From the NCBI GenBank assembly GCA_964247055.1, contig OZ176051.1, positions 13,268,001-13,332,000 on the forward strand: a stretch of 64,000 nucleotides of DNA, in the 5' to 3' direction. Shown in pieces: positions 3,931 to 24,276 of this stretch. Each line of letters begins with the position of its first letter. The stretch's first letter is position 1. Source of the DNA: Paragordius varius (lineage: Eukaryota > Animalia > Nematomorpha). Under the pieces are notes generated by a model, which worked only from the letters and a program-made list of their open reading frames with translations, made no database searches and was not told the origin of the DNA. The translations under genes and the position numbers were made by a program.

Positions 3931-5872
3931 TTAATGTGCATGAAAATTTGCATTTTGACTTGAAGAGCTATCTCTTTGTTTTGCGTTTCGCCAATTATTA
4001 TCTGGTGTTTGGGGGTTGTTATTTCCGTACCTAAGCCCTCCTGATTTAGGGTTTGAATTAGGTCCAGCCGGTGATAAAGGATTAGTATTATTATAAAAAT
4101 TGGCGTTAGGGGAGACTGAGATATCAGAACGGACACTGTATTGTGATGTGAGGGAATGTTGATGTTGATTTTGTCTATTAATATTAACAGGGGGAGGATG
4201 ACTAGGTAATTGATAATTGCCGTGAGGATTGTATGTTTGAGGTGTCGTACTACTGCTTGTCGTCCCATACATTTTACTAGCTTTTTTAGCCATGGTGGCC
4301 AACAATTCTTGGCTGTGTTTAAATGTGACACACAACGTATTTATCCACTCTTTGAGGCCAACATCATCCTGAAAGGTGGGGGGAAGGGTAAATATGTATA
4401 AATACAGTATGCACATTTATAATATTGGTCAATTCACATTATTTTCACGGGTGATTGGTAATCCAGTAGCGTATGGATAAACCAAACAAATGGTTGATAT
4501 TACAATCCTATGTCACTGCAATAAATGTGTTTATTTAATTATGGACAAAATTCGCTCTGTATTACCAATTGGCCAACAATGTGAATTTACCAGCATTAAT
4601 GCCCAATTTAAAATTTTGTAAAAAAACCATTATTTTATATCGCCAGAACTAGTGTTCTATCAGGTAGTATTAACTGGGCCTACGTATTAAATTGGTATGT
4701 AAAAAATGCTATTTTGTTATATAATTTAAATAAATAAATATCAAAATAAAAGCCAAACAAAACCATATATTACTTTGTGTCAACTTTGATAATATTCGCA
4801 CAAACAGTTCCACCGAAATATATTAATATAAATACATGGATAATAAGCATTTTAAGTTATAAATTTATTACTTGTTGGGTTAATATAATCTTTTCTTTCA
4901 TTTTCATGTTTATAATTATGCACTGTTCACCCTTGATCACCATGAATTCAGGATCGACGGATGCGATTTGGTCCATAAATACCAGCTAAAAAACATAATT
5001 TATATTGTTATTAAACATTAGAAAGTTTATTAATTAACAAAATTACGTTTCAAAAAACTTAAAGCAGCGTGCCTGCAAAACAAAAACAAAATAAGTTGTT
5101 CATATAATACTTCAGGTTTTCCCGATTCCGGGTATAATTCAAGTCGATTCGGGTATAATTTAACATACCGAGTTTGCCAGGCTGAGGCAAAAGGACCCCC
5201 AAGTTTTTTAAGGTAGCCATGTATGATACAATCAGATTCTATATATGCATTAAATTACTCGAGATATATATATATATATTTAAAACCATTTGAAATATTT
5301 TAGTTAAAATTATGCATAGTAAAATTATATCTGTTTAATTGTAAAGATATTCTTGTTAAAACCGTTTGTTAACATATATCGTTGTGAGTTCCGTCTCTAT
5401 TTCATATTATTGGATAATTGTAATTATATATAATAAATGGCCCTTAATTAGTTATTTTTACTTTTTGTAAGTGTTGTTAAATTAAACTATTTGCTCTAAA
5501 TATTCGTATATACCCTTTTCATCAGCATCAAATTTGGTTTTTTGTTTGTTTCGTTTTTTAGCCTCTAATTTATCAGTTTCTTGGTTAACTACATCAAACA
5601 CCGTTTCTAACATGATAAATAACAATATATAATTATGCATATATACCATATACACTTCCTTGAACAATTCGAATTCACCCTAAAATAAATTACGTGTTTT
5701 TTAAGATTAAAAATTACCTATATTTTATATTTAGATAATGAAATTTTGTTTCAAATTAAATTAAACCAAGTCATAGAGATATATTTCATATTCATAATCA
5801 GTTATATTAGCCCGAAAACACATAATTTATTTTTAGGGTGAATTTAATTAGTTCAAGATGTGTATTGTAAAT

Positions 5873-5909
<37 letters not shown>

Positions 5910-6946
5910 AAAGTATTTTAGTAAAGATGCTTAAATAATGCTAAAAAAATATTTAAAAAACTTTTTAAATCGATTGGGTATATAAACCCTCCCTTTCGAA
6001 ATAAAATATTCCAGGCATGTTACAATACTTTGTCACATTATGTTGTTTAAAAAACCGAACTTAAAGTTCTAGAATATTAGTTCAATATTTAACCACTAAA
6101 AAATTTTAATATTTTACAGTATTTTCTAATCGTTTTTACACAATCATTGGAGTATGGTTATTAATAAATATAAAGATTAAATAGTTATCTAATGTTACTC
6201 AACAATTATAAAAGTTAATAAATACATAAAAACTCAAACATATAACCTGCAATCTCCTCTTGCCATCGTTCTGATATGACTATGGGAAAATTTTTATAAA
6301 TCTCCTGATCGGATTCAGTTAACTAGGGATAATAAAAACAGAATAAAGTTATTAATTATTACAATAATAAAACTATGTATATACATTTTATCATATCTTT
6401 TATTTAAGGACTTAAATTGCATTGATGCTCTTGGCGCATGAAGCTTTAACAAATGGATATAGTAAGAAAGGTATATAAAGTTTTAGTTTAAATTTTATAT
6501 TTTCCCTCCTTTAAAATTGGATTATTGCCCAAAAACATCGCAATTTTTCCCTTATTGGAAACGTTAATCTAGTTTATGAATTAATTTATAAGTTTTAATA
6601 AATTATTTAGTAGATTCGCTCCAAAAATGGCATATACGACCAAAAATAAAAAAATCTTTTAAAAAAATCTATTGTATAACCCTTCTTACCATTTTACTCT
6701 AAAAAGTTGTGCCCTATAATATTTAAATTTTTATAAAAACTGGCAAGAAAAGCGAGCGTAAAATCAAGCAAACAAAACTTTAATTCCTTTGGTGTCTTCC
6801 TCATCGAAAGAGCCAATATCAAAAGCATCGGCAGCATTGACTTCCCCCCGAGGGGGTATGAGAGGCGGCGGATATCTCCGCATGTAAACCATGGTCCAAT
6901 CTACACCCAAAAAGAATGGATGTTCTTTCACTTCAATCGCTCTGTT

Positions 6947-14100: not shown

Positions 14101-17100
14101 ATTTTTCCTGTATCAGCTTTCCGGCACCCATAAACCTCTCCGAAACCTCCACGGCCTATAATTCGATGGACACTGAAATCGTTCATGGTTAACTATTATA
14201 AGAGAATTTATATTAATTTAATTATAAATATTAAAACCATTTACACTTTAACTTCAGCCTTGAAGTGTAAAATTCGCTCACCCTCAAACAATTTAAATTA
14301 ACCGTTTGAAATATTCAAAACCTAAAATAAATGAATATTCAAAATTAATAATATTATTATATACTTTTAAACAATGAAATTTTTGTTTAAAATCAACATA
14401 AAATACAAACAATAATAAACTATGAATTTGAAATAATACACTAAGATCTATATATATATATATATATATAATATATTCGAATATATTTGATACTTTAAAT
14501 ATTATACAGTATACCTAAACATTTATATATTCTGCCTAATAAGCTTTCTATAACAAACCGCATCTTCAAGTTCTTTTTTTAGTTTGCTTAAATTTGGATA
14601 TATCGTTTCGAAAGAGTCAAATTGAACCAAATAAAATTATTTTTAATTTTTCTTTAATATAATTATTATTTTATAATATTGCGGGAAAAAAACTGATATT
14701 AACACAATTTATCATTGGATCTAAAGCGAAGCTATAGCTATAAAATTACGGCCTCCTACCAATTAATTTATTACTTCTTACTTTATCATAACGATTCAAA
14801 TACCGAATAATTATAATAATAAACTGATATAACAATTTTAAAAAAACGACACCTGAATTATGAATAATCTCAACACATTAAAATTTGCCTGGAACGTCGA
14901 TACTTTAAATGGAAAACTACACATGATAATTAATTTTCTCGAATCTAAGAATGTTGACATCTGCTGCTTACAAGAAACCAGATTTAAAGGAGATATCTTA
15001 ATTAACGAACAATTACACAATCACTATTAAGCACAAGAAAATGGTCAGGCTGGTGTAGCGATAGCGATTAAAAACCCTCTTCGCGAGATGTTATCCAAGT
15101 AATGAGACACAATGAAAGAATTATACAGCTAAGGGTTGCGCACGATGACTACATCCTAAATATAATATCGATATACGCGCCCCAACCAGGTTTAAAAGAC
15201 GAAATTAAACAACAATTTTGGACGGAACTCCAAGATCTAACGAATACAATACCAGGCAAGGAATCCATCTTCTTAGGAGGTGACTTTAATAGTCACATTA
15301 GTAATAATGAACACGATTTCAGGGAAGTCCATGGTGGAAACGGCTATGGCAGTACTGACAAGATGGGAGAACAGATGTTAGAATATTGCCAAGCAAACCA
15401 CCTAATCATAGCCAACACCCACTTCACAAATCTTACCACTGTTCAAACAGCAAACTCTTCTACCATGATAGATTTCATCCTTTTGCCTAAAATAAAACGG
15501 TCACAATTACTTAACATTAACTCATCAAACTAGCTTCACATTACACAAAATCTTGATTGCAGTCTTGAAAAAACCAAACAAACATCAACCCTTATACCAA
15601 AGACCAGCCAAAATTAACCACAGCAAACTACAAAATCAAACAATCAGGAACAAATACATCAACCAAGCATCCTCCGAAAAGCTCCAGCAAAACAATGAAT
15701 CCATTGGTTCAAGATGGGATAACCTAAAAACAATAGTTGAAACAGCAGAAAATATTTGTGGGAGATGCAAACCATACAATAAAAAAAAGAAAAATTGGTG
15801 GTGGAAAAAGGAATTAAAAGAGGTTACTAAAAAAACGACGCCTTTAAAGCATGGATAAGAGATAGCAATGATAAAAACAGACAAACATATCTGATCGCAA
15901 AACACAAAGCGCAGAAAGAAATTAGAAAAACTATAAATGTAGATTGTCTAAAACTGGCCACTAAACTAGAGGACCAGGTTAAAAATAAAAAAAATTTTAA
16001 ATACATAAAGAATATAAACTCAAACAAACAAGATATCATTAAAACCAAATGTATAAAAAACAATATGAATGAAATAATCTCTAACCCAGAAAGTGGAATT
16101 AAGATATGGAAAGAAAGCTTGGAAGAATCCATGAACCAAACCAACAATTTAAAAGTTCCTCTAACATTAAAACCACCCAGCGGACCCATCCACGAAATCA
16201 CAGAAAACGAAGTATTAAAAACAATGCAAAAAATGAAACCAAACAAGTCGTCAGGTGCAAGCGAACTATCAGTTGATCTTCTAAAACCGATGCAATGCTT
16301 AACAACTACCTTACAACTTTTTTTAATGAAATTATTACCAAACGTAAATTCCCCATGACTGGAATAAAAGTATAACAATCCCTATATATAAAAAAGGGGG
16401 ATCGTCTCGTCTGCTCCTTATACCGCCCCTTAAAACTTCTAGAACACACTTTCAAAATATTTGAAAGCATCATTGACAACCGACTTAGACAAATCATTAC
16501 AGTAACAAATCAGTTTGCAATTCGTAAAGAACACAGCACTACAGATGCCATCTTCATTATCAGGACAGGAAAAATACCTTTCAAAAAATCAAAAACTTTT
16601 CCACATCTTTTTACACCTGGAGAAAGCTTTTGATAATATCTCTGGGGCAACAATCAAATGAAGACAAAATTACATCGAAGAATATCTAATTGAAATAATA
16701 CTAATTCATTATAAAAATACAACCACAATGGTACGCAGGCAAATAGGAGACACGGAACCTTTTAAGACAAACACTGGCCTACACCAAGGGTTTGTAGTTA
16801 GTCCATTTATATTCATTATAATATTAGACTGTATCATAAAAAACATATCTACCCAACCCCCCTGGGAGTTAATCTTCGCAGAAGACATTGTTGTAACAGA
16901 TATTTCCATTGAAAATATGTCAAACAAATTTATAACATGGAAAATCTGCCTAGAAAACTATGGGCTGAAAATAAATATTAATAAAACTAAAATAATAATA
17001 TCAGGAGATCGTACCTAGCGCCCCAAATATTCATGCGCTATCTGCGACAAGGAAGTCAAAACAAATTTAATAAAATGCAACAAATGCAAATTCTGGGTTC

Positions 17101-18144
17101 ACAAACAATGCTCCAAAATAACCGGCAAACTAAACAAACAAATAAACATTAAATGTAACAACTGTAAAAACAATAATCCAACTCAACACGCTCGACATAT
17201 GTGACAATCAACGAAAAATCAATAGAAAAAGTAGACCAGTTTACCTCTCTAGGAAACATCGACTCTAAAGGCCATATAACTGGAGCAATAAGGAAACAAA
17301 TATAACAAGCATGGGGTAAAGTTAACTCTCTAAAATTTGTCCTTAAAAATAAAAATGTATCTAACAATAATAAATGGCTAATATACAAAGCAGGAGTCAG
17401 GCCAGCTCTTACTTACGCCACCGAAACATGGCCCCTAAATTAAACAAATCTTGACAAAATGATAAATACGGAAAAATTAAAGCTTGCTGTTCTGACTACA
17501 ATATTCATCTTAAACACAAAAATGACACAATAGAAAAGTTTATACAAAGAAGCAGGCTTAAATACTTGGGTCACATTGAAAGAAGACAAACCGACCATCC
17601 ACTCCAAACCATTAAGCACATACAACCCTTTGGAAACAACCGCAAAGGGCGCCCAACATATTCCTGGAGCGACAGCATTAAAAATGACATAAAAATACTA
17701 AACCTCGATATTAATAGATGTCTAGATAAGGACCTTTGGAATAAGACCGTAAATGGTAACCTTCATACATGAAGTCAAAAAGCCATCAATTATCAAGTAT
17801 ATATTTTTAAAACTTATTTAACAGAGTATAAGTAAGTATACTTTGCTAGAAAGTTATTAATTATTGTCAAATAGCATATACAACAAAGGGAAGTATTATT
17901 GGCTTATAGATATTTTATTTACTATTATTAGCCAATAATAATTTGCTTTGTTGCATATTGTATTTGGAAATAATTAATAATTTTCTAGCAATATATACTT
18001 ACTCATACTGTATTATTCACATATGGTTTCGGGTGAAATAACTAAGTGTTAGAGATGTAAATTAGTATTTCATAAGCCATATAATAATAAATCCATATCA
18101 ATAAAAAAATTAGTAAGTCATCTAACTTTTTCCTTGTTAAAGAG

Positions 18145-18181
<37 letters not shown>

Positions 18182-21100
18182 TGAATATTTAATTCCAAAT
18201 TTTTCCATTGACAAAAGCGCGTAAACTTTTCACTAAATTATAATAGAAAATAGAATCGTTAAAAATAATGAAAAGATTTATACATCCATTTTTTAATATA
18301 TATATTATTGTGTTAACACCCAGTATTTTAATGAGTATAATTAAAATATTTAATTAAATATACATATGCAAATTTGGGCATAAACTAAAGTAAAAACTCA
18401 CAAAACTTTTTTTGTTAAAATATGTGTATTTTTTTCGATCCTTTATATAAAATTAATTTTTATTAAAATTTTATTATTATATATGAATATACCTTTCTAA
18501 AAAACGTTGAAATATTTCACCACATAAGGATTGATGAATTTCTTCAATGTAGGGCTAAATTTGAAAAATAAAATCATTTTTAGTATTAATTTTCGATACA
18601 TTTACGCGTGTGTCTAAAATACAGCGAGCCGCCGCATATCAAAAAAAACTTTGATGGCATATGGAAAAAGTATTGATTATTATTTGTAGGAAACTAATTT
18701 GTTTAATGATAACTTTCTTATTAAAAATTTGATTTATTAATTTATTAAACTAATCATAAATATTACTAAAAATATGCTGGGATTAATACATAAAACCCAA
18801 ACGTCACAAATATCATAAAAATTCTAATGTTTATCTATCACATTTTACGGTACAATTGCTTATAAAAGCGCATTTTTTAAAATTATTTTTCTACTCATAC
18901 CATAAAATAAGTTTTTTTAATGATAAGTAACAATAAGTGATATTTTTGAAAAAAGCCTGATACTCGATATACTCGACATATTAAAGATGAGGCGTTGAGT
19001 TATTTTTTAATTTACTGATTTAACTCCACTACGGTTACGGTATTAAAAAAATGTATTAAATGTTAGTTTTATTAATTTTTGTCTTTTATCCAAAAAAAAT
19101 AAATCCCTATCCTTAGTAAAATACGCTTTAAAATAAAATATTATGCGTATGGACTACTATTATATTTAAGTAGGATACCGCGCGTAAGACGTCACTACCG
19201 TAGTACTTTATGTAATTCAGTAGCAATATGATTAAAATTGTTTTAAATATTTACTTTATTTGTCAAAATCAATATTAACATCCTTAAAAACAGAGATATC
19301 AGTTTAAGTATAAAACCATGGTGTTTTAGGTAGATAGCTGTTTTTCCAAAAAAAAACTTCATGAAAGTAGGCAGACGATTAATTGGATACGTACCTTTGT
19401 TTTGAAAAACGACAAATATACACAAGTGTATTTCACCAAAAACTATCATTTTTATCATTCAATAGTTATGTCATTTTGCACATGAATAAAAAAAATTACG
19501 ACACGCATTACCATCAGAAGAAAAATGCTGTTAAAAGTTATCGTTTGCGGAATAAACATATGGTCAACGTGTTCTGTCGGTTAAACATGTGAAACATGGT
19601 TTCGAAATATTAAAAATTGAAATTTCACGTGAAATCTACATCCCATTGGGACGGGCGATGAATAGTGTTTATTTTGCAAATTCAAAGCAAAAAACCGTTT
19701 TTAATCTTAGCCGTTCCATCCAAAATATGGCCAAATCGCTTAGGCAAAAAACCCATGCTCCATGTCAATTTAAATTTTTGAAAACCCATAAGAATATATA
19801 TGCACTATATACTATCGCTAAGAATTACCAAATTAAAACCATGTGTTAATCAAAAAACAAACGAAACGAGTCAGAAAATATCGCAAAACTTTGATAAATG
19901 ACAATGTTCGTCAAGCACAGATAGTGGGAAAATACTATAAAATTGCTTCGATGAGAAATTTCACATCCGCTGAGTCTCCTGACTTGGTGCCATCTGACTC
20001 GCATCAATGAAACAGACTCTAGCAAAGCATTTCTTCAATAATTTCGAAAAAATTAGAAAATTCCTTGACAAATGGTTCGCAACAGTAAATTTTTTTGGCC
20101 CGGCATTCATATATTACCTGAGAGATGAGCGTGATGAAGTCAATGTACAATTAATTAATTTCCTTTAAAAAATTATTAAAAACTTATGGATAACCGTAAT
20201 AAAACTATTACGGAAAATGTCAATCCACAATATTATCTATCCCAGGTATTTATATAGAGTGGCGAACATGTACCCTAATAATTTTAGCTGAAAAGAAAAA
20301 AATGGAGATTAATTGCCACGATGTAATGATATAAATTAAAAAACTGTTTGACAAAAAATCGTACTTCATATCATTGTGAAATGTATTTACCTCTGATGTT
20401 AGCATTAGTTACCATTACAAAAAGATGCCTACCCATTTTTCACAATATTATAATTAGCGAAAATAGAAGAAGCCTTATGCGCCTTCAAACAAATAACTCT
20501 TTTGCTTAAATATATGTTTATTTATAAGGAAAAATCGATAATATAATATACATTATATAAATACATATATACATATATATCATGCACAATCTGTCATTTA
20601 AAATTTAAGATTATTCCCTCTTAATATTAAATACTTCCCATGTCATTTAAATGCGCTACAATAAACATAATAGCTAAAACCTCAACAAAAAACGTAACCC
20701 ACACACGCTTTACAAAAATGTAAAACATAAAAGTTTTTTCCAATAATATATAATCAACATTCTTAATTAAAATGAATTGTTTAGTTACAAAAAAAGAGAT
20801 GCAGATTATATGAAGAATATCAAAAAAATTAAAACAAAACATTTTCACTTATTAATAATATCTAAATCACACAATTGTTTCAAAAGTGTTATCCATTAAT
20901 TTAAATATCAAACGGAATAAACACAATTTTCCTAAATTTTTTGAAAAAAGGTTGCGCGCAAACATCAAATCAGTTAGCATGGTATTAGTTTAAGAGTGGA
21001 AATATTAATAATTAATTAAATAAATTGACAATTGTTATAATTCAAAATATTTTTTTTGAAATTTTCATATACCTTTTCAAAAAGCAATTAGGATAAAAGG

Positions 21101-22061
21101 TAGGTAGTTATTTTAATTTAATTAAACTAATTCAAGATCAACAATCAAACACATTTCTATATTAATTTAAAATATTTTTTTTCTAAAAATAACATTTTAT
21201 AAAAAGAGAGAGGCATTAATGGTCAAAAACATTATTAAAAATGCCGCAATCATATCAAGATTAGTTGACAGTTTGAAATTAATAAAATTTTAATTAAATT
21301 ATAACGAAAACGGAATATTGTTTGATGGATTAAATCTTTTTTTGGATAAAGAGATTAATTATGAAAAATCCAATGATGTAAAATATTTAAATGAAAAAAA
21401 TAGGAAACTGGACAAAATCTAATATATATATATATATATAGAATAATATTAAACATATATGTGTTAAATTACTTCGAATAGATCTGATGGTACTTGATGT
21501 TTAATAAGAATTGATTGTACCCGTTTTAAAGTGTCATTTGAAAATTTCTAAGATAAAAAAAGTAAAAATATCGAAATAAATTAAAATAGAATTCAATTTA
21601 TTTTTTGAATTACATGAGATGAATTGAGTAATTCTTTCATGATAAAGTTATCGTAAACATCTTTGGCATATTTGAGCCTTTCATCATATGTTTCCAGTTT
21701 TTGATATTTTTTAATCTAATTTAAAAATAAATACGTAATATACCTCTTCGTAAAACTCTAATTGCGGAACTTGTGTTTCATACACATTTTGGCAAAAATC
21801 TTTGAATAATAAATATCCTATACACATAAATTATACTAATCAACCTAATTTTTGATTAAATATTTTATCAAACGTTAGTTCACCAATTTTTTCCAAATGT
21901 TTTTGCATTATACTTTTTACGCTATAGAGATTAAACAAATAAATTTACCTGACGTCTGGAAGAACAATTTTTTTACTTGCTCGGGCCGCAGGAGTAGTTT
22001 TACTTTTCTCCATGGCCATCAGATAACTCACATCGGCTAATACAGCTTCCAAATCAGCCAT
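3931..22061 (-). CDS. GRK2: G protein-coupled receptor kinase 2 / beta-adrenergic receptor kinase orthologue (RH + kinase + PH), about 780 aa, 21 exons
   Basis: Exons on minus strand: 22061-21949, 21921-21845, 21817-21744, 21715-21614, 21547-21473, 18554-18493, 18232-18181, 14192-14101, 13051-12952, 12437-12356, 11309-11179, 10495-10401, 9966-9859, 8946-8880, 7929-7829, 6941-6779, 6322-6247, 5606-5514, 5238-5111, 4985-4872, 4368-3931. Total 2343 nt, all GT-AG, phases consistent. Motifs: [55 protein letters not shown], and PH domain [23 protein letters not shown]. Confidence 0.97.
5646..5874. mobile_element. CCATTT-terminal non-autonomous TIR element (short copy) in GRK intron 17
   Basis: ta|ccatatacac...tgtaaatgg with ttgaacaattcgaa and gggtgaatttaa subterminal motifs, followed by (TA)n. 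Confidence 0.7.
6949..7014. repeat. (AT)33 microsatellite abutting the GRK exon 16 acceptor
   Basis: Perfect AT dinucleotide run. Only CTAACAG separates it from the exon on the minus strand. Confidence 0.95.
8150..8414. mobile_element. MITE with degenerate TIRs, TA-flanked; a related copy lies at about 13060-13520
   Basis: The left end tac...gacggacataa...aaagacaaata is mirrored at the right end by tatgtttgtcttt...tgtccgta...actgta. Confidence 0.55.
9351..9784. mobile_element. CCATTT-terminal TIR element with 21-25 bp subterminal repeats (GRK intron 13)
   Basis: ta|ccattaac...gtaaatgg|ta, with about 7 tandem ttcaagggtgaatttgaattg-type units at the right end. Confidence 0.85.
10007..10327. 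mobile_element. CCATTT-terminal TIR element (GRK intron 12)
   Basis: ta|ccatttacagttcaaattcaccc...gggtgaatttgaactgtaaatgg|ta has near-perfect termini and is followed by (TA)n. Confidence 0.88.
10724..10880. mobile_element. AT-rich palindromic MITE, same family as 17826-18008
   Basis: Shares gtatgagtaa, attaattatt, caacaaa and ttggctaataatagtaaa motifs with the 17.8 kb copy. Confidence 0.5.
11821..12002. mobile_element. Tc1/mariner-type MITE (TA target-site duplication)
   Basis: TA|CAGTATGCATT..ATGGTTGCTTATTTCACACTATAG ... CTATAGTGTGAAATAAGCAACCAT.AATGCATACTG|TA, with long near-perfect TIRs. Confidence 0.88.
12521..12784. mobile_element. CCATTT-family TIR element, left end degenerate (GRK intron 9)
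   Basis: atttacagatcaaattcaccc...agggtgaatttgaattgtaaatgg|ta. Confidence 0.75.
14237..14450. mobile_element. Truncated CCATTT-family element (left end only)
   Basis: ccatttacactttaacttcagccttgaag...caccctcaaacaatttaaattt. No right TIR seen; followed by (TA)n. Confidence 0.55.
14860..17800 (+). mobile_element. Near full-length degenerate RTE-clade LINE (APE endonuclease, RT, PHD finger), antisense in GRK intron 7
   Basis: APE motifs WNV..L, CLQET, IYAPQ, GGDFN, IDFIL. RT motifs GLHQG..SPF.F, FAED (catalytic D changed to E) and NKTK. C4HC3 finger at 17034-17165. C-terminal LGH..R and RKGRP..W.D. Multiple stops and frameshifts. Confidence 0.93.
17826..18008. mobile_element. Palindromic MITE
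   Basis: gtataagtaagtata.ttgctagaaagttattaattatt ... aataattaataattttctagcaa.tatatacttactcatac. Confidence 0.75.
19350..20200 (+). mobile_element. Internally deleted mariner relic in GRK intron 5
   Basis: Degenerate [42 protein letters not shown] and GIHILPER motifs. Confidence 0.78.
21716..21743 (-). other. 28-nt spliceosomal micro-intron (GRK intron 3)
   Basis: GTATATTACGTATTTATTTTTAAATTAG lies between LEFYEE and IKKYQKLET. Retention frameshifts. Confidence 0.92.
21818..21844 (-). other. 27-nt spliceosomal micro-intron (GRK intron 2)
   Basis: GTTGATTAGTATAATTTATGTGTATAG interrupts [13 protein letters not shown]. Retention gives an in-frame TGA. Confidence 0.92.
21922..21948 (-). other. 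27-nt spliceosomal micro-intron (GRK intron 1)
   Basis: GTAAATTTATTTGTTTAATCTCTATAG interrupts [14 protein letters not shown]. Retention gives an in-frame TAA. Confidence 0.92.
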
Positions 22062-24276
22062 CTCAATGTGCTATATGGTACCAAACTTTGTATACATTTA
22101 CAATGAGATTAAAGTAACATAATCAAGGGTAAAGTATAAATATATAAATAGGTGCTTAAATTTTAAATCAATATTACATGAATGTTTGAATTGCACATGT
22201 TTAACACATTGCTAAATTATTTAAGATCGATTAGTTATATAGTGGTTTCGGTTTTCTTTAATCACACCAATAATATTCCAAAAATTATTTGTTTGGACTT
22301 AATTTTATTTTTGTTTCGAAATAGTATGGTAAAAATATAATATAACTTTGTAAAGACAATTATCATTTAATCCCAATAACGCGTAAAAATATTTTAAAAT
22401 TTTTTATGTTTTATTTGAATTTTGGTTATGTTTAATGTTAAATTTATTATATTTTAAAAATATTATAGATCAGTGGTAATCACCAAAATTTTAAGGGCCA
22501 AAAAATATTTAAATAGTTTCTAGGGCCATAATCCTGAATAAAATTTAACATTTGCAGATCTATATTAAGTAAAAATAAAAATTAATTAAGGGCCATAAAA
22601 GTGCACTTTTAGAATGGCATGCGACCCGTTGGCCGCGATTTACTCCTAATTTAAATTATTTTAACTGGATTAACCAATCTTTATTCAACATCTGCAGACA
22701 AATCTTCTAAAAAAATATAAATTAAAAAAAGAATTAAACATTTTCTAATCTTAATTTGGCGGGCTAGAATTCATCATTAAATAAGGGGTAAAAATATCCT
22801 AAATATTTTATAGAAAAATATACCAGGAATAATACTTTTGGTTTTGAGTACAGACAGTACAAAAATAATATATTCACTTTTGTGCTAATTTTATCCACAT
22901 ATAAAAATAGCGAATTTGCGCATATTCTGATAACACTGCCTCCAAATCCCGGAGGGGTTAGATAATATTTTGATGAATATATATTCTGATAGTAAATTGT
23001 AGCAGTATCATGGTTTTGGTTTTCGTTCTTACGGGTGTAGAAAGTTATTTAGACTTTTGTGGCAGGTGTTGCATATCAAGAAATGACTAACACATACTTT
23101 TAATTAAAAATTTTTTGGTGAAAGCTGGAGACACTATTCTAAACATCACTAAAATATCTCATATACACATAAAAAGCAAATATTGTCTCAAAAAATAAAT
23201 TCTTAAATTTTCCGCTCTTCTTAAATGAACTAATCCTCTTAACACCGATACAAATTGGGATCTAAATACCCCAAACTAAATTTAAGTCAATATTTTTAAA
23301 AAACTACTGGAGGAAACGGTACCTATTTAAATTTATGCTTCTATCCTAAATAAATTACATAAAAAATATTTAAATAAACTTTTGTATTGAAAAAAAAAGT
23401 TCCATGTCAAACTACATAGGCGCCATTTTTATTTTACAAAATTTTTGCAAAATATCGTGTTCATATTAATTTAAAGGTAAAATTAAAGATAATTTTTATT
23501 TAAATCACATCTAACATTGATAGAAATAGAAAATGTGGTTCATATTGCAATTTTTTAATTTAGCCAGTGCACACATGTCAGATTGACTTAATTTTTACCT
23601 TTGGGTTTTACCATGAAATATGGAATATCAAGCATATTTGAATGATTTTTTTGTTATATTCCGGTTTATTATGTTGTATAAGTGCAGAATTTCGCCATGG
23701 TTTCGATTCCTTCCATTATAAAGTATTTCATTTTAATTAAGCGTGGGGTATCCAACCACCTCAATTTGAATCGGAGAACTGAAATAAATGTTTGTATCCA
23801 AGTGTTAAAATAAGCGCAAAAATTCCGAAACTGCGCAAAAAAAAATTAAATATATGAAACATTTTGATATCAACTAAAAATAATTTTAAAATGCTTTTTC
23901 AAAAATTTATATTTTAGCAATATTTTGTCAGAGCCTACTTCACTGTTTTTCATCATGATGGAAATGATTTTTGTTTGTTTTCAAATTTTCGTAAATTATT
24001 TTGTAACACAATATACTTAATATAAATTCAAAACGAAAATTTTTTTAATCGAATTGAGTATTAGAAATGTTTAGGCAAACCTAATTTATAATATCTTGAG
24101 GCGTTTTTATATATTTTCGATCATGAAAATATAAGGCAGCTTTTTTAAAATTTTATTGACATAATTTTAGCATTTATTCAAAATTTGTATCGCGCAATCT
24201 CGACATTTTAACGTATTAAACTTAAAACTTTATATCGTTAGAGTTTTTATTGATATTGTTTTGCTTTTTATATAAA

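Follow-up and report, generated by a model that had tools for sequence, protein, structure and literature searches.

Comparative evidence for three introns of 27 to 28 nucleotides at the 5' end of a GRK2 gene in the hairworm Paragordius varius

Introduction

Can a single animal gene be spliced through introns of fewer than 30 nucleotides (nt) as well as through introns of 4 kb? This question is raised by a GRK2/3 gene of the hairworm Paragordius varius (Nematomorpha), which lies on contig OZ176051.1 of assembly GCA_964247055.1. The stretch that we analysed, 64,000 nt from positions 13,268,001 to 13,332,000 of the forward strand, is called the window below, and coordinates are counted from its first base. 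Three consecutive segments of 27, 27 and 28 nt interrupt the 5' end of the gene on the minus strand, and introns further downstream in the same gene reach 3988 nt. Animal introns shorter than about 30 bp were long considered absent (PMC13644364, Sept 2026). Among the 51 genomes surveyed in that study, such introns were found only in myxobolid Myxozoa and in Dicyema japonicum, both with genome-wide intron shortening, and further lineages carrying them were predicted. In the literature that we searched, introns below 30 nt in animals were reported for dicyemids and myxobolid cnidarians only, and no paper connected hairworms with tiny introns. Here we describe the GRK2 locus, where tiny introns have base-exact comparative support and have passed an independent check of the DNA, and we conclude that the three segments are very probably real, spliced introns.

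Results

Three micro-introns interrupt the conserved N-terminus of a GRK2/3 orthologue

The window contains a complete GRK2/3 orthologue of 21 exons on the minus strand, with the ATG at 22061 and the stop codon at 3934. As a reference for its structure we used P0020, a full-length 700-residue GRK2-type protein found by an exhaustive protein search with a GRK2-specific exon (window 6779-6943); the gene of P0020 encodes RGS, Pkinase and PH domains and spans 1.26 Mb. When P0020 was compared with the window by tblastn, all 21 exons were recovered in order from 22061 to 3934. Splice sites were then picked by a script, which selected a frame-keeping GT/AG pair at each junction between adjacent exons. 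Exon 1 matched the PDB chains of GRK2 and GRK3 over residues 1-36 (E ~2e-14) and includes the conserved N-terminal helix of the GRK2/3 subfamily, and exons 1-4 translate as the GRK2/3 N-terminus. Pfam matches to parts of Pkinase and to the beginning of PH follow the correct order along the gene; the exons of the RGS region are individually too short for a Pfam score, and the order RGS, AGC kinase, PH is given by the collinearity of the exons with P0020. The gene had been identified as an animal GRK2 in the initial annotation, and the collinear match to P0020, the ordered Pkinase and PH pieces and the match to the GRK2 and GRK3 chains establish this.

All 20 introns of the gene have GT-AG ends. 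From the first to the last they measure 27, 27, 28, 66, 2918, 260, 3988, 1049, 514, 1046, 683, 434, 912, 950, 887, 456, 640, 275, 125 and 503 nt. Seventeen of them are therefore 66-3988 nt long, those from intron 5 to intron 20 being 125-3988 nt, and the three shortest, hereafter micro-introns, occupy ordinal positions 1-3 only.

Exon 1 (21949..22061, 113 nt) begins with the ATG at 22061 and ends in phase 2 within a Ser codon. It is followed by micro-intron 1 (21922..21948, 27 nt, GTAAAT...TATAG, phase 2), exon 2 (21845..21921, 77 nt), micro-intron 2 (21818..21844, 27 nt, GTTGAT...TATAG, phase 1), exon 3 (21744..21817, 74 nt), micro-intron 3 (21716..21743, 28 nt, GTATAT...ATTAG, phase 0) and exon 4 (21614..21715, 102 nt), all on the minus strand. 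Positions 21716 and 21948, given at the outset as the limits of the finding, coincide exactly with the 3'-terminal base of intron 3 and the 5'-terminal base of intron 1. Downstream of exon 4 are an ordinary short intron of 66 nt in phase 0 (intron 4, 21548..21613), exon 5 (21473..21547, 75 nt) and the first long intron (intron 5, 18555..21472, 2918 nt), again on the minus strand.

Excision of all three segments yields a single open frame through exons 1-5. Read without splicing, the sequence meets a stop codon in or just after each micro-intron: retention of intron 1 introduces an in-frame TAA at once, retention of intron 2 an in-frame TGA, and retention of intron 3 a frameshift followed by a stop. 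In the tblastn alignment introns 1 and 2 appear as nine-residue, stop-containing insertions that are absent from P0020. The main claims made for these segments at the outset were thus confirmed: their lengths and GT-AG ends are exact on the minus strand, their exact removal is needed to rebuild the GRK N-terminus, and their sizes lie under the ~30-nt floor stated for animals and within the range of dicyemids and ciliates.

The sites of the micro-introns are shared with other animals

On the minus strand each kb contains about 28 GT..AG segments of 20-35 nt, so the dinucleotides alone say little and position is the real test. We estimate the chance of GT and AG coinciding with three exact conserved sites at roughly 5e-9. 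The first site was examined by a search with a 41-residue open stretch around exon 1. All 120 of the exon-1 open reading frame (ORF) fragments listed from other animals follow GRK2 to residue 37 and lose homology at residue 38, which is R in 111 and S in 9. None of the 120 runs on into exon-2 sequence; each meets a stop or unrelated sequence instead. An R at residue 38 is what would be expected if an AG|GT donor were read through, and the loss of homology at this residue therefore indicates that the intron-1 site (phase 2, Ser codon) is very widely shared.

For the sites further downstream, 10 kb following exon 1 were taken from long contigs of other animals (37-42% G+C) and the exons were mapped. 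Contigs L001-L005 and L016 contain exon 1 only. In both L009 and L017, exons 1-5 are 113, 77, 74, 102 and 75 nt long, exactly as in the window; introns 1-3 measure 108, 173 and 4095 nt in L009, and introns 1-5 measure 99, 238, 2368, 153 and 66 nt in L017. Exons 1 and 2 were mapped in L006 and L007 (113 and 77 nt in each), with an intron 1 of 174 and 195 nt, respectively. Introns 1 and 2 of the window gene each have the same site and phase as in L006, L007, L009 and L017. Intron 3 agrees in site and phase with L009 and L017, and intron 4 agrees in site with the same two contigs; the codon position is shared by every intron in this comparison. L008 has the first three donor sites in common with the window gene. 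A protein homologue search with a 40-residue stretch of exon 4 returned zero candidates. Since the exon lengths are identical and the sites and phases are shared, introns 1-3 are, judged by this comparison, ancient introns that have since shrunk, the other animals having introns of ~100 nt to 4 kb at these positions.

Splice signals are alike in micro-introns and long introns

The 5' ends (GTAAAT, GTTGAT, GTATAT) and 3' ends (TATAG, TATAG, ATTAG) of the micro-introns resemble those of the long GRK2 introns, most of which start with GTA(A/T); TAG terminates 17 of the 20 introns overall. Splice-site motifs are thus the same in the two size classes, with three micro-introns in the comparison. The three 5' ends do not resemble those of U12-type introns and do not contain the ATCCTT motif. 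Each GRK2 micro-intron contains a candidate branch motif, TAAT or TAAAT-like, 5-14 nt before the AG. Two further putative micro-introns were found in the window at the 5' end of another minus-strand gene, TRMT2A: both have GT-AG ends, with lengths of 26 nt (40676-40651) and 23 nt (40529-40507), and in both a TAAAT motif precedes the AG by 6-9 nt.

A search of the genome found several U1 genes with a ACTTACCTG 5' end, many U2 genes with a GTAGTA branch-binding box, and U6; SF1-type and SAP30BP-type (HCNGP) domains are also encoded. An inventory of splicing components had been among the checks proposed at the outset. As run, it found U1, U2, U6 and the SF1-type and SAP30BP-type domains all present, a result that does not separate an ordinary from a specialised splicing mode. 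No match to U12 small nuclear RNA was obtained in the genome, yet the control genomes were also without a match, and the search is uninformative on the minor spliceosome. One U1 gene, L011 (G000:C6:606254-606419; 122 bits), has the 5' end ATACTTACTTGG instead of ..ACTTACCTGG; the altered box is the one that base-pairs with the final exon nucleotide, a position at which many GRK2 5' splice sites have A or T.

The micro-introns are most likely removed by ordinary U2-type splicing

Ordinary U2-type splicing by intron definition, working at a very low length limit, is the most likely explanation of the locus. In this explanation, ancestral GT-AG spliceosomal introns would have shrunk to 27, 27 and 28 nt, and the major, U1/U2-dependent spliceosome would recognise each tiny intron as one unit. 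The signals used would be the GTA or GTT 5' end, a candidate branch A in the TAAT or TAAAT-like motif 5-14 nt upstream, and the TAG 3' end; a micro-intron left in would give a message with an early stop. We infer the removal of introns 1-3 from RNA at the GRK2 locus, and likewise the branch sites and the use of the standard machinery.

Several points weigh against this explanation. The branch points are guesses made from three sequences only, and with them just ~14-20 nt would separate the 5' splice site from the branch, far less than human and yeast spliceosomes tolerate in vitro. Stops that appear in frame when a micro-intron is retained carry no significance at such AT-richness, the micro-introns being ~80% A+T. 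The two largest presumed RNA runs (X6 and X8, from different samples) placed no reads at the GRK2 locus. A processed copy of the gene, described below, stops short of exons 1-5, and a whole-genome DNA search with 21473-22120 matched the locus alone, revealing no second copy of the 5' exons.

A related possibility is that the introns are real and that a specialised short-intron route operates beside the ordinary route for kilobase-sized introns, either through U2AF-independent recognition of the 3' site of the SPF45/RBM17-SAP30BP type or through cap-proximal, co-transcriptional help near the 5' end. Such a route would explain the 5' polarity of the micro-introns, which are found at positions 1-3 of 20 only, and both TRMT2A micro-introns are likewise at the 5' end of their gene. 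It is also favoured by the length of 27 nt, which leaves no room for a polypyrimidine tract, and by the HCNGP domain encoded in the genome. However, the motifs are alike in both size classes and the factor domains would be expected in any animal. We consider a specialised route rather unlikely, and it would refine ordinary U2-type splicing by intron definition, not replace it.

The micro-introns might instead be spliced inefficiently or conditionally, so that their retention, coupled to nonsense-mediated decay (NMD), acts as a brake on GRK2 output. All three give a premature stop if retained, and very short introns of Microsporidia are reported to splice poorly, in work cited in PMC13644364. 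Chance stops are, however, expected in introns of ~80% A+T, and we give this explanation little credence. For the same reason, visibility to NMD as a designed feature was considered and dropped as evidence.

The gene has been transcribed and spliced, and its DNA is correct

A whole-genome search with P0020 identified a processed, intron-less copy of GRK2 exons 14-21 at G000:C3:12128197-12128889 (L022:1310-2191). The copy is 90-97% identical in DNA to exons 14-21 of the window gene, and the protein match across it passes three stop codons. Introns 14-20 are gone, and the four junctions that we read base by base are exactly as modelled. Since the junctions are exact in a processed copy, the GRK2 gene has at one time been transcribed and spliced, and the 3' half of the gene model is validated.

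The DNA of the 5' region was checked against two sequencing runs. Run X2 consists of short reads from another study and another sample, with a word depth of ~461 and 0.85% sequence difference. In X2 a single 703-nt contig is collinear with 21455-22158, with no indel within 21716-21948. Six substitutions and a 1-nt gap separate it from the window. Exons hold three of the substitutions (22005, 21894 and 21491), each at a third codon position and synonymous when the exons are read spliced; a fourth, at 21828, is in micro-intron 2, and intron 4, 66 nt long, has the other two together with the gap. Although small, this silent-only exonic pattern is consistent with purifying selection on the reading frame expected after splicing. 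Contigs of run X5, which is probably the source of the assembly itself, are identical over 21581-21822 and 21932-22228, a range that includes all of intron 3 and parts of introns 1 and 2. Micro-intron 3 is unchanged in the contigs of both runs.

Two features of the flanking DNA were seen in the same comparison. A (TA)n microsatellite lies at 21412-21452, just inside intron 5, and the X2 contigs break there. Immediately 5' of the GRK2 start, at 22129-22252, X2 assembles into two alternative contigs of depths 204 and 330, which look like two haplotypes of the material sequenced.

A decaying pseudogene, in which partial deletion has left behind intron remnants that splicing no longer excises, would be compatible with the lack of reads from X6 and X8 at the locus. 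This is very improbable, as the reading frame is open in 21 of 21 exons, all of them strongly conserved, GT-AG is kept in 20 of 20 introns, the three exonic differences between the two samples are all synonymous, and genome-wide there is no other GRK2 copy except the partial processed fragment. The idea that longer introns had been collapsed or mis-polished to 27-28 nt, named at the outset as an outcome that would overturn the finding, is refuted by the independent X2 contig, collinear across all three introns without an indel, and by the exact agreement of X5 over intron 3 and parts of introns 1 and 2.

Remaining gene structure and neighbouring sequences

Exons 6-21 were placed by tblastn against P0020, and their edges were set by the splice-site script. 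All on the minus strand, they are exon 6 (18554-18493), exon 7 (18232-18181), exon 8 (14192-14101), exon 9 (13051-12952), exon 10 (12437-12356), exon 11 (11309-11179), exon 12 (10495-10401), exon 13 (9966-9859), exon 14 (8946-8880), exon 15 (7929-7829), exon 16 (6941-6779), exon 17 (6322-6247), exon 18 (5606-5514), exon 19 (5238-5111), exon 20 (4985-4872) and exon 21 (4368-3934), the last of which includes the stop. Much of the 3988-nt intron 7 is occupied by ORFs on the opposite (plus) strand, at 14860..17800, that by eye resemble non-LTR retrotransposon sequences for an endonuclease and a reverse transcriptase. The initial annotation had described introns of 0.3-4 kb in this gene and transposable-element content in the long ones; the size range holds, with its upper end reached by intron 7, which also contains the retrotransposon-like ORFs. 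Elsewhere in the window, several minus-strand ORFs at 816-2708 look by eye like serpin exons.

Discussion

The GRK2 micro-introns have the length that defines the ultra-short class of animal introns known from Dicyemida and Myxobolidae (<30 nt). That class is also marked by the shortening of most introns, to a median below 30 nt, and this does not hold within the GRK2 gene, where 17 of 20 introns are 66 nt or longer. As in Dicyema japonicum, according to the summary in PMC13644364, these are animal GT-AG introns below 30 nt at conserved positions. In contrast to Dicyema, where nearly all introns are tiny and the genome is compact and fast-evolving, only three of 20 introns are tiny in GRK2, the others extend up to 4 kb and include transposon-like sequence, and the protein shows strong conservation.

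The myxobolids Henneguya, Thelohanellus and Myxobolus offer a similar comparison. Their introns fall in the same length range (medians of 22-27 bp) and have A-rich candidate branch sites a short way before the AG, U2 is canonical in these animals as well, and the introns were likewise validated through conservation of their positions and of the exons on either side (PMC13644364). The candidate branch motifs of GRK2 and TRMT2A resemble the weakly conserved A residues that precede the AG in the micro-introns of myxobolids and Dicyema (PMC13644364). Myxobolids differ in being cnidarian parasites whose genomes are reduced and whose introns are shortened throughout the genome. Their motifs are reduced to GTa...AG (PMC13644364), whereas GRK2 has GTA(A/T)..TAG in both size classes, with only three micro-introns to judge from.

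Neodermatan flatworms come closest to the 5' polarity of GRK2: in them a short mode at the first intron positions exists beside long introns. In Gyrodactylus the short mode is at ~32 bp and occurs chiefly among first and second introns, and tapeworm introns have a bimodal length distribution (PMC4040987). The flatworm mode of ~32 bp or more lies above 30 nt, unlike the 27-28 nt of GRK2 and the 23-26 nt of TRMT2A, and the lineage differs. In the GRK2 case, introns of less than 30 nt are combined with 5' polarity and with kilobase introns in one gene.

Outside animals, ciliate introns are of similar length (~25 nt in Paramecium, 15-16 nt in Stentor; PMC5014332, PMC13644364), and their retention is likewise visible to translation through stops or frameshifts, but in ciliates all introns are tiny. 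Some short human introns with truncated pyrimidine tracts use SPF45/RBM17 and SAP30BP (PMC8363638; bioRxiv 10.1101/2022.12.30.522300). Human cells resemble the present case in having short and very long introns under one spliceosome; the human model intron of 56 nt is, however, about twice as long as a GRK2 micro-intron.

The finding has a practical side. The default minimum intron of gene finders of the AUGUSTUS type is ~39 nt, and gene finders or aligners with a minimum near or above the size of the micro-introns would fragment such genes at the 5' end. The low BUSCO completeness of hairworm genomes (71.6%; bioRxiv 10.1101/2023.06.26.546503) could therefore in part be an annotation artefact and not gene loss; that preprint makes no mention of introns.

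We suggest, tentatively and with low confidence, that P. varius represents a third independent origin of animal introns shorter than 30 nt, and the first in which they stand beside kilobase-sized, transposon-filled introns in the same transcripts and are confined to the 5'-most positions. If this is true, introns too short for the textbook layout of 5' site, branch and pyrimidine tract would be recognised in a position-dependent way (cap-proximal or co-transcriptional) or by specialised factors. Sub-30-nt animal introns have been listed only for two parasitic lineages with compact genomes (PMC13644364), and here they occur in a conserved gene of a repeat-rich, 110.6-Mb genome with 4-kb introns alongside. 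Tiny introns in such a genome imply that genome compaction is not the whole explanation for them. A transcript that carries both 27-nt and 4-kb introns would be a natural substrate for defining the lower length limit of the animal spliceosome and what it needs to work there.

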